A stretch of DNA of 63,485 nucleotides, filler included, from Reticulomyxa filosa (Eukaryota > Protista > Foraminifera), in the NCBI GenBank assembly GCA_000512085.1. It is 11 parts of 11 records of this genome, joined end to end, with 100 filler letters (N's around TTAATTAATTAA, not from the genome) between each part and the next. Parts side by side here need not be neighbours in the genome. Positions count along the whole stretch, not along the records: positions 54,158 to 59,540 come from ASPP01012029.1; 10 more parts are not named here. The stretch is one strand, 5' to 3'. The first letter of the stretch is position 1. The number at the start of each line of letters is the position of its first letter. Positions 55,281 to 57,139 of the stretch are shown in pieces. The position numbers and the translations under genes are program-made. Below the pieces are notes generated by a model. The model searched no databases. It saw nothing but the letters and a program-made list of their open reading frames with translations, and was not told the origin of the DNA.

Positions 55281-56234
55281 ATGATGTTTTCTCGTTTTTC
55301 ATACTCAAAATGTCTGTCTTTTGCATTACCACTACAAAAGCTTCAATTCAAAACAGTAGGAAATAGGTGTGTTTCCTCATCAACCTCAACAGTAGGGCTT
55401 TTAGGACCTCATGACGTAGGTGGGAAAAGTCCGGAAGGTTACCCCAATAAGGGGCCAGTTTTAAACAAAAAGCCGCGAATGTTATCGTATTGGGAAAGGA
55501 AGGTGGACGCATTAGAGAACGTGTTGCTGGGCAAAAAGCTGTATTCCTTGCATGCATTCCGCCGAGCGATCGAGTCAATGCCAGTGGAGACATACAACAA
55601 GACGAAATACTATGAAAAGTGGTGCTACGCAATCTTCAAGATGTCAATGGAGAATCAATTGATGACAATGGACGAATTTTACAAAGTGTACCAAACAATG
55701 TTGCAGTCTAAGCGAAGCTGTTATTCTTCGGTGAGCTCCAACCAGCCAAAATTTAAGATGGGCGATCGCGTGATCGTCTCTTGGGACGACCATGCCAGTG
55801 AGCATGGACATCTTGCACAACTGTTGCCACCTTTTCACACGCGCGTGCCAGGTTACATCCACGAGAAGGCGGGAGTGATCGAGCGCTATTGCGGAGCGAT
55901 TGAAAACCCCGAACTTGCTAGTTTGGGGCTTAATCACGTTGTCCCCGTTCATTTGTATCGTGTCCGATTTGATCGCGCTAATGCTATCTCATCTTCAAAC
56001 ACTCGACATTCCAAAGAAGAATTTGCCAATCCCAATGACACTATCGACATCGAAATCATGGAACATTGGATGCAACGAGAAAAGCATAGTCAGAATCAAC
56101 ACGATCATGATCATGATCATGACCATGACCACGATCACGATCACGACCATGATGGTGATCACGATCATCACGATCACCACCATCATCATCACCACCATCA
56201 CCATGGTTTGTAAGAACAAAAAAATTAAATGTTC

Positions 56235-56268
<34 letters not shown>

Positions 56269-57139
56269 TATACGTATTTGTTTATACGTTCTTTTTATTT
56301 TTTGTATTGCTCGTTTTTGTAAATTGTAAATAAAAAACAAAAGGAAAGAAGACGAAAACAAATGAAGAAACAATACTGCCTTTGCCTCATCGCCCCCATG
56401 AAACGCGCAGTGAAATTGAGGCCAACGCGATTGACAAAGAGTACAGCTTGTCTCCATATGAAATCATTTGCGATGCTATGATCGAAGTGCTGATTCGGAA
56501 CGGACACATGACAATGAAAGAACTTCGAGAGCAAGTCGAAGTCACCGACGCGTCGCAAACAGAAACTGTGCAAAAACAAAATAAATTCTCTTTGGGCAGC
56601 CAAATCGTACTCCGCGCGTGGAAAGACTCTACTTTTCAAAAGACTTTGTTGGACAGCTCTTTGCAACGGAATAATCAATTAAACAAAGCCATTGAAAAAA
56701 CCTTTAATGTTCGAATGGGATCAAGCATTTTGTGTGTCGTTGCAAACACGCCAACTATACATAATATCATTGTTTGCTCCTTATGCAGGTCCCCTTTTTT
56801 TTTTTATCTCATAAATAAAAGAAACGAAACACAGAATTGTTGCTTTGTTTGTTTGGACCATACAGTTGCTATCCGAGAAGATTACTGGGAATCCCTCCTG
56901 ATTGGTACAAGTCATTATATTATCGCACTCAATGTATTAGCAACCCTCGACAACTGTTGAAGTATGAATTTGGATTAGACTTGCCACAAGACATAACATT
57001 GAGGGTTCATGATTCCACTAATGAATTGAGATATCTGGTCCTTCCGCATCCTACACAAATACCTGGTTGGGAAAAAATGCCAGAAGAACAGGTCTTGCAA
57101 AAGTTGAACCGTGACATGTTAATTGGAACTGCACGTTAA
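55281..57139 (+). CDS. Fused nitrile hydratase beta-alpha (NHase/thiocyanate hydrolase family), 547 aa; exons 55281-56205, 56344-56788, 56866-57139
   Basis: Beta motifs: GPHDVGG, WERKVDAL, FRRAIESM, YYEKW, PKFKMGDRV, HTRVPGYI, LYRVRF. His/Asp linker. Alpha motifs: GSQIVLRAWKD..F, VVANTPTIHNIIVCSLCSCYP..LLGIPPDWYKS..YR, VHDSTNELRYLVLP, RDMLIGTA. Exons sum to 1644 nt = 548 codons. Confidence 0.95.
56100..56204 (+). repeat. CAY/GAY codon repeat encoding (HD)9-GD-HD-HHD-H10 linker
   Basis: About 22 His in 35 residues; mixed cat/cac and gat/gac codons suggest selection at the protein level. Confidence 0.95.

Follow-up and report, generated by a model that had tools for sequence, protein, structure and literature searches.

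Within a window of 63,485 nucleotides from the foraminifer Reticulomyxa filosa (the whole stretch of joined genome parts, filler included, along which all positions are counted), we analysed the region 54158-59540, which carries a candidate nitrile hydratase (NHase) gene. In the list of open reading frames (ORFs) this gene appears as three separate pieces on the + strand, namely 55281-56213, a frame open across 56334-56960, and 56837-57139. We consider it highly probable that the three pieces belong to one nuclear, three-exon gene for a 547-residue single-chain NHase of the eukaryotic beta-alpha fusion family. The predicted protein starts at 55281 (+) with ATG ATG, just after an in-frame TAG at 55278-55280. 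Exon 1 (55281-56205, +) comprises 308 codons plus one base, G, and is followed by intron 1 (56206-56343, +; GTTTGT..CAAAAG, 138 nt), a phase-1 intron whose boundaries are predicted and whose removal creates the junction codon G|GA (Gly). Exon 2 (56344-56788, +) encodes the end of the linker, followed by the alpha domain's N-terminal half as far as V-C-S-L-C and the AG of a Ser codon. Intron 2 (56789-56865, +; GTCCCC..ATACAG, 77 nt, phase 2) splits this codon, Ser457, as AG|T, and exon 3 (56866-57139, +) supplies its third base, then C458, Y459 and P460, and completes alpha with its C-terminal half, ending in the stop codon TAA at 57137-57139. Frame arithmetic on the sequence gives 308+1+147+1+90 = 547 residues, and the coordinates, phases and 547-residue frame put forward in a preliminary description of this DNA all agree with the sequence. 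An AATAAA lies past exon 3, at 57182. The guanine-plus-cytosine (GC) content is 40-45% in the exons versus 26-29% in the flanks, and it is 16.7% in intron 1, near both ends of which there are in-frame stops (TAA at 56211-56213 and TAA at 56331-56333). An exact look-up of the 310-residue ORF found no called gene on record. Intron 1 also holds an uninterrupted run of 31 T (56237-56267).

Comparison with Pfam hidden Markov models, a check that the preliminary description had proposed, placed both the beta and the alpha domain above the gathering cut-offs (21.5 bits for PF21006, 27.7 for PF02211 and 27.2 for PF02979). On exon 1, NHase_beta_N (PF21006) covered residues 42-145 (8.6e-15, 55.3 bits) and NHase_beta_C (PF02211) covered residues 153-237 (8.4e-10, 39.4 bits). 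Together with TIGR03888 and PDB beta-chain matches, these define a beta domain at residues 42-264 (55404-56072, +); exon 1 matched the PDB beta chains 4zgd_B and 3qxe_B, and the FR..IE and HTR.P.Y motifs align with 4zgd_B. The NHase_alpha profile (PF02979) was divided between exon 2 (profile positions 4-97, 1e-14, 54.8 bits) and exon 3 (profile positions 99-184, 7.6e-27, 94.3 bits), and PDB alpha chains matched exon 3 at 2.6e-22. According to work on bacterial NHases, a pair of Arg and the Tyr residues of the beta subunit keep the oxidised Cys ligands and the substrate in place. The residues conserved in the family's beta domain are kept here (R94, Y110, Y111, W114, H186, R188, P190, G191, Y192 and W263), and R94, Y110, Y111, W114 and R188 stand in columns that are 94-99% conserved across 97 relatives. 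The predicted protein retains the metal ligands as well as the family-conserved beta Arg and Tyr residues. Across the 97 full-length fused relatives, 86 columns are at least 90% conserved and filled in the present protein. It keeps 69 of them, including C, L, C, C, Y and P of the metal motif, R94, Y110-Y111, W114 and H186-T-R188-x-P-G-Y. As these 69 columns are kept and the beta motifs can be aligned with beta chains of known structure, we conclude that the gene is under selection, and its product is most likely a functional enzyme. One further candidate assignment, a leader-peptide precursor of ribosomally synthesized and post-translationally modified peptides of the NHLP type, was rejected, as TIGR03793 reached 32.3 bits against a cut-off of 50.9 and lay beneath the stronger NHase_alpha match.

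The second intron runs through the predicted active site. The first part of the metal motif occupies 56772-56788 (+), with V452 C453 S454 L455 C456 at 56772-56786 followed by two bases of Ser457; C-Y-P starts at 56867, after the intron, and the motif V-C-S-L-C-S-C-Y is whole only after splicing. Across this gap, the NHase_alpha profile ended at position 97 in exon 2 and resumed at 99 in exon 3, PDB chain 7qop_A aligned up to residue 110 and then from 112 onwards, and matches to the relative P0019 stopped at 368 and restarted at 370. As one residue is missing in each of these three independent comparisons, homology fixes the position and phase of intron 2 to the base, and the 97/99 gap bears out the earlier proposal that the Ser codon is split as AG|T. 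No alternative GT or AG near intron 2 restores the invariant Ser of C-x-L-C-S-C.

Intron 2 also bears on whether this DNA could be a bacterial contaminant or a recent bacterial insertion, an explanation to which we assign next to no probability. Most NHases are bacterial, the present clade has VHDSTAD and CYPR in common with some proteobacterial alpha fragments, and a tree of exon 3 gives no firm placement. However, an intron that cuts an active-site codon and has to be removed to restore the motif effectively refutes contamination. Moreover, prokaryotic data sets lack, according to Marron, Akam and Walker (2012, PMC3323583), any beta-before-alpha fusion with a linker in one frame; the flanking DNA is rich in AT and in homopolymers; and the best matches for the beta domain and the N-terminal half of alpha are fused proteins of eukaryotic type. 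Because homology leaves no choice but to accept intron 2, GC differs sharply between the exons and their flanks, and the architecture is that of the eukaryotic fusions, the sequence evidence excludes bacterial contamination, as the preliminary description had concluded from the introns together with the neighbouring genes, of which the latter do not bear it out (see below).

Several points weigh against reading the locus as one intact NHase gene. The profile, homology and tree searches were run with the three exons apart and not with the joined 547-residue chain. The equivalog cut-offs were not reached: TIGR03888 gave 7.3e-23 and 81.6 bits on exon 1 (cut-off 152.2), and TIGR01323, the NHase alpha model, gave 45.2 bits on exon 2 and 91.5 bits on exon 3 (cut-off 249.85), scores to be read against the fact that these NCBIfam models are bacterial, that the exons were scored apart and that a sub-cut-off score is expected for a divergent eukaryotic member. 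Within the metal motif, TCC at 56778-56780 encodes Ser454, where all 316 relatives with a readable motif, including the nearest relative on the TARA Oceans scaffold L001, have Thr (C-T-L-C-S-C). This Thr is among the 17 of 86 conserved columns that are changed, so that activity and metal are not certain. Finally, we infer the splicing of intron 1 at 56206/56343, which joins beta and alpha in frame, from the features set out below; its donor GTTTGT and A-rich acceptor context are weak, and GTAAGA at 56210, the donor that looks best, cannot be joined in frame to any acceptor.

The first junction sits in a spacer over which the relatives cannot be aligned: W263-M264 are the last of the conserved beta columns, the alpha columns begin with a His at exon-2 residue 18, and homology, with relatives aligning only to about W263 and from exon-2 residue 14-17, leaves the junction itself unfixed. 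Six in-frame GT-AG pairs can be drawn for intron 1, from the donors 56089, 56155 and 56206 and the acceptors 56343 and 56367. The same fusion might therefore be spliced elsewhere, with donor 56155 or 56089 dropping part or all of the His/Asp tract, or with acceptor 56367 dropping eight more linker residues. We regard such alternative sites as unlikely, because 56089-56205 is exon-like and codes for an (HD)n linker, as in P0243, P0244 and L001, and it is only past 56210 that GC drops sharply and the T31 run starts. Among the six choices the pair 56206/56343 is the most likely one, favoured by the exon-like composition and (HD)n coding of 56089-56205, by the drop to 16.7% GC and the start of the T31 run just past 56210, by an alpha frame without ATG before exon-2 residue 44, and by the single ORF of L001, which aligns with exon 1 and then with exon 2. 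The acceptor could nevertheless be off by eight codons.

The weak donor and acceptor, and a strongest donor-like site that is out of frame, would also fit an intron 1 that is not spliced at all. The beta protein would then end with a His-rich tail at the TAA 56211-56213, and alpha would be a separate protein or the gene would be decaying. This seems very improbable to us. The first in-frame ATG of the alpha frame occurs only at exon-2 residue 44, beyond the conserved H..E N-terminal motif, and the 138-nt gap at 16.7% GC leaves no room for a promoter. In addition, the beta and alpha parts are contiguous in the nearest relative, and three long open frames with 69 of 86 conserved columns have been kept in an AT-rich genome. 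The reading that we prefer, in which intron 1 is removed in frame, thus agrees with the single-chain beta-linker-alpha gene with spliceosomal introns that had been proposed initially, for which the Pfam matches of each exon and the intron 2 gap speak directly and in which intron 1 is the predicted part.

All eukaryotic alpha domains have been described as VCT, the cobalt type, and not VCS, the iron type (Marron 2012, PMC3323583). The VCS of the present protein, unique against the 316 relatives, together with the long branch and the many altered conserved columns, could point to a changed metal or chemistry, such as an iron-type centre or a non-nitrile substrate as in thiocyanate hydrolase. We find either change distinctly unlikely. 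The Tyr following the motif, the cobalt-type residue, is kept, and not replaced by the Thr of iron enzymes. In the cobalt enzyme of Pseudonocardia, the exchange T109S alone is reported to be neutral and to leave the enzyme like wild type, while Y114T reportedly loses cobalt (Miyanaga et al. 2004). As the Tyr is kept and T109S is reportedly neutral, cobalt is by analogy the more likely metal. Thiocyanate hydrolase itself was ruled out as an assignment: its gamma model, TIGR03887, scored below TIGR01323 in exon 2 (33.8 versus 45.2 bits) and in exon 3 (75.5 versus 91.5 bits), and the beta domain is here one piece with both Pfam halves, not split into two subunits. A single A-to-T change suffices to give the TCC of Ser454.

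Between the two domains lies a linker of roughly 60 residues with about 24-25 His in total. The last 46 residues of exon 1 include 23 His and 12 Asp, and the His/Asp tract (residues 274-308; 56100-56204, +) consists of (HD)n and then a run of ten His. The DNA under the tract is a microsatellite-like (GATCAT)n / CAC array (56103-56203) with tandem-repeat periods of 6, 3 and 24. (HD)n linkers are also found in P0243 and P0244, and at least ten linker His are present in 41 of the 97 fused relatives, including Tetradesmus, Raphidocelis and Physarum, against a median of 8 His among the relatives. This ruled out the His-rich linker as an unusual trait; the present gene is at the high end but not unique.

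The preliminary description had proposed a self-contained enzyme whose linker may deliver metal. The first part of this proposal is consistent with the review PMC7193024, by which no activator is known for eukaryotic NHase fusions, and the second is weakened: according to the same review, the (His)17 of the Monosiga enzyme is unnecessary for metal incorporation (Yang, Bennett and Holz 2018, as cited there). A His/Asp linker that acts as a built-in metallochaperone and replaces the bacterial activator would fit both the lack of a known activator and the recurrence of His-rich linkers in 41 of 97 relatives from several supergroups. We nevertheless think this improbable in view of the dispensable Monosiga tract, as reported in that review, and of the many His-poor relatives, the short linker of L001 and the slippage-prone, microsatellite-like nature of the repeat. 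Most likely, the linker serves as a flexible tether, prone to slippage, rather than as an obligatory metal-delivery device. That no activator or amidase gene lies on the contig, which had also been brought forward, is uninformative for a 5.4-kb piece of a eukaryotic genome without operons.

Ahead of the beta domain, the predicted protein has an N-terminal extension of 41 residues (55281-55403, +), a candidate organelle presequence. It is rich in Ser, Lys and Arg, with no acidic residue, five basic residues and 11 Ser/Thr among the 41, and it aligns with the N-terminus of the L001 protein. The extension resembles a targeting peptide, and targeting to an organelle is possible. Extensions of at least 30 residues occur in about half of the full-length fused relatives; many are Arg-rich, which suggests organelle targeting in part of the fused family.

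The gene is remote from all relatives found. A word search with the fused relative P0001 returned 993 proteins of 290-924 residues with an alpha domain, most of them also with a beta domain, from dinoflagellates, diatoms, haptophytes, green algae, a ciliate, a fungus, Physarum and many metagenomes. The word search with the beta domain covered targets of at most 539 residues, so that a 547-residue orthologue fell outside its range, and gave three matches. An exhaustive HMMER search with exon 2, which covered 1.84 billion representatives including lengths beyond the range of the word search, yielded 98 matches, the best at 37% identity, and no closer orthologue among them. The best exon-2 matches were fused proteins of 450-560 residues, aligned from exon-2 residue 14-17 at target positions ~240-300. 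Fused relatives were 30-33% identical in beta and exon 2 and about 50% identical in exon 3. Compared with the eukaryotic beta-alpha fusion family, the present protein and its TARA relative stand on a long branch; identity is 30-37% in beta and the N-terminal half of alpha and about 50% in the C-terminal half of alpha. In a tree of exon 3, whose 87 columns are too few to place the lineage, the present protein paired with the TARA protein P0123 on a long branch with an SH-like approximate likelihood ratio test (SH-aLRT) value of 98, and the remainder was unresolved.

This nearest relative is encoded on TARA Oceans scaffold L001 (ERZ28653928, scaffold_34912), as the protein P0123, 68% identical on exon 3, and a 346-residue beta call. 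The fusion is one uninterrupted ORF in L001: the ORF at 1351-2337 aligns with exon 1 residues 2-288 (36%, 3e-51) and then with exon 2 residues 15-65 (41%, 6e-10). Like the present gene, it has CYPRR, VHDST.E, LPH, an N-terminal extension and AT-rich DNA; unlike it, it has a short linker (NHNHDDGAHNHRH) and a VCT motif, and lacks both the linker intron and the active-site intron. The two genes called in 1351-2945 of L001 (beta, 346 residues; alpha, 158 residues) are in fact a single fused gene, whose one intron, of phase 2, is at 2340-2467 (GTTGAG..ACACAG); upstream of this gene, at 443-1081, is an adh_short gene.

The enzyme class, the architecture, the His-rich insert and an active-site intron have all been published, and the present gene is a very divergent further member. 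In Monosiga brevicollis, beta, a His-rich insert and alpha form one chain, and a 96-bp intron lies within the coding sequence of the active site (Foerstner 2008, PMC2603476). The Monosiga gene resembles the present one, as predicted here, in having beta first, then the His-rich insert and then alpha, in the intron within CXXCSC active-site coding sequence, and in having no known activator gene. It differs in length (496 versus 547 residues), in its insert ((His)17 versus (HD)n + His10) and in its motif (VCT versus VCS), and the present gene has a second, predicted intron, in the linker. P0288, which also has 496 residues, was ruled out as the Monosiga enzyme because it derives from Logan contigs. 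Fusions of this type are present in several supergroups, including Rhizaria (Bigelowiella natans; Marron, Akam and Walker 2012, PMC3323583); fused relatives of the Monosiga type had rightly been named at the outset (PMC2603476, PMC3323583). The family described in 2012 shares with the present gene the beta-alpha architecture predicted here, a variable spacer, spliceosomal introns and a presence in Rhizaria.

According to the same survey, intron positions of eukaryotic NHase genes are lineage-specific and not shared (Marron 2012, PMC3323583). The active-site intron of the present gene was absent from six of six other loci, in L001, Hyaloraphidium, Prymnesium, Cyclotella, Tetradesmus and Polarella, which fits this statement. 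In the NHase gene of Polarella glacialis (L006 9842-10070), an intron immediately precedes the Val of VCTLCSC, one codon off and not at the position found here. It is a possibility that the Ser-codon intron sits at the same base as the active-site intron of Monosiga, and if so, this would be the first intron position common to NHase genes of different supergroups.

Compared with the bacterial two-subunit cobalt-type NHases (Pseudonocardia thermophila 1IRE, Bacillus 2DPP/7QOP), the present protein shares, by sequence, the alpha and beta folds, C-x-L-C-S-C-Y-P, the beta Arg pair and the Tyr residues. In contrast, the bacterial enzymes have separate subunits, usually encoded in an alpha-beta-activator operon and without introns, and CYPW and VWDSS versus CYPR and VHDST here. 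The proteobacterial alpha fragments P0125, P0186, P0199 and P0203 have VHDSTADMR and LCSCYPR, as does the eukaryotic fusion clade. They mark the bacterial group closest to that clade, which agrees with the affinity to proteobacteria put forward in 2008. As these fragments carry VHDST too, it was ruled out as a eukaryotic signature.

By analogy with characterised NHases, we would expect the beta domain to pack on the alpha domain and a low-spin trivalent metal to be coordinated by the motif's three Cys and its Ser. Of these Cys, two would be in oxidised form and kept in place by Arg94 and Arg188 of beta, and the reaction catalysed would be the hydration of nitriles to amides. One could further combine the unusual features of this protein, such that VCS alters metal choice or maturation, the unusually long (His-Asp)n-His10 linker serves as an internal metal store and the presequence directs the enzyme to an organelle, a joint reading to which we lend little credence. 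Among the papers that the literature search covered, none links NHase with foraminifers. New here are the extreme divergence, VCS in place of VCT and the conserved N-terminal extension, and the gene adds an intron-bearing, very divergent member to the eukaryotic single-chain NHases. Two generalisations of the 2012 survey are corrected. His-rich spacers, described there as an opisthokont trait, are not confined to opisthokonts, given the present gene and 41 of 97 relatives, green algae and Physarum among them; nor do all eukaryotic NHases have VCT. The natural combination of VCS and Tyr offers a ready-made test of what determines metal preference. For annotation, the gene shows how an intron through a catalytic codon can make one gene look like three unrelated ORFs.

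The ORFs that flank the NHase gene had no Pfam match and gave weak language-model leads, which does not bear out the eukaryotic neighbours named in the preliminary description. Upstream, a 250-residue ORF with several hydrophobic stretches (54221-54973, -) lies 307 bp from the NHase gene in divergent orientation. Language-model leads for it pointed to eukaryotic hypothetical membrane proteins (7tm_3 / THH1-TOM1-like), and one lead cluster, commonest in Foraminifera, had a fairly high score that was nonetheless below threshold, so that it is a lead only. Downstream and convergent with the NHase gene, a chain of ORFs of 143, 103, 136, 73 and 108 residues (57773-59468, -) looks multi-exon and gave one uninformative language-model lead, DUF1153, with a somewhat lower score. 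Long A/T homopolymers are scattered in the flanks (for example at 59503-59527), with C and G runs at 58174-58185 and 58877-58886, and homopolymer lengths may be in error in the assembly.

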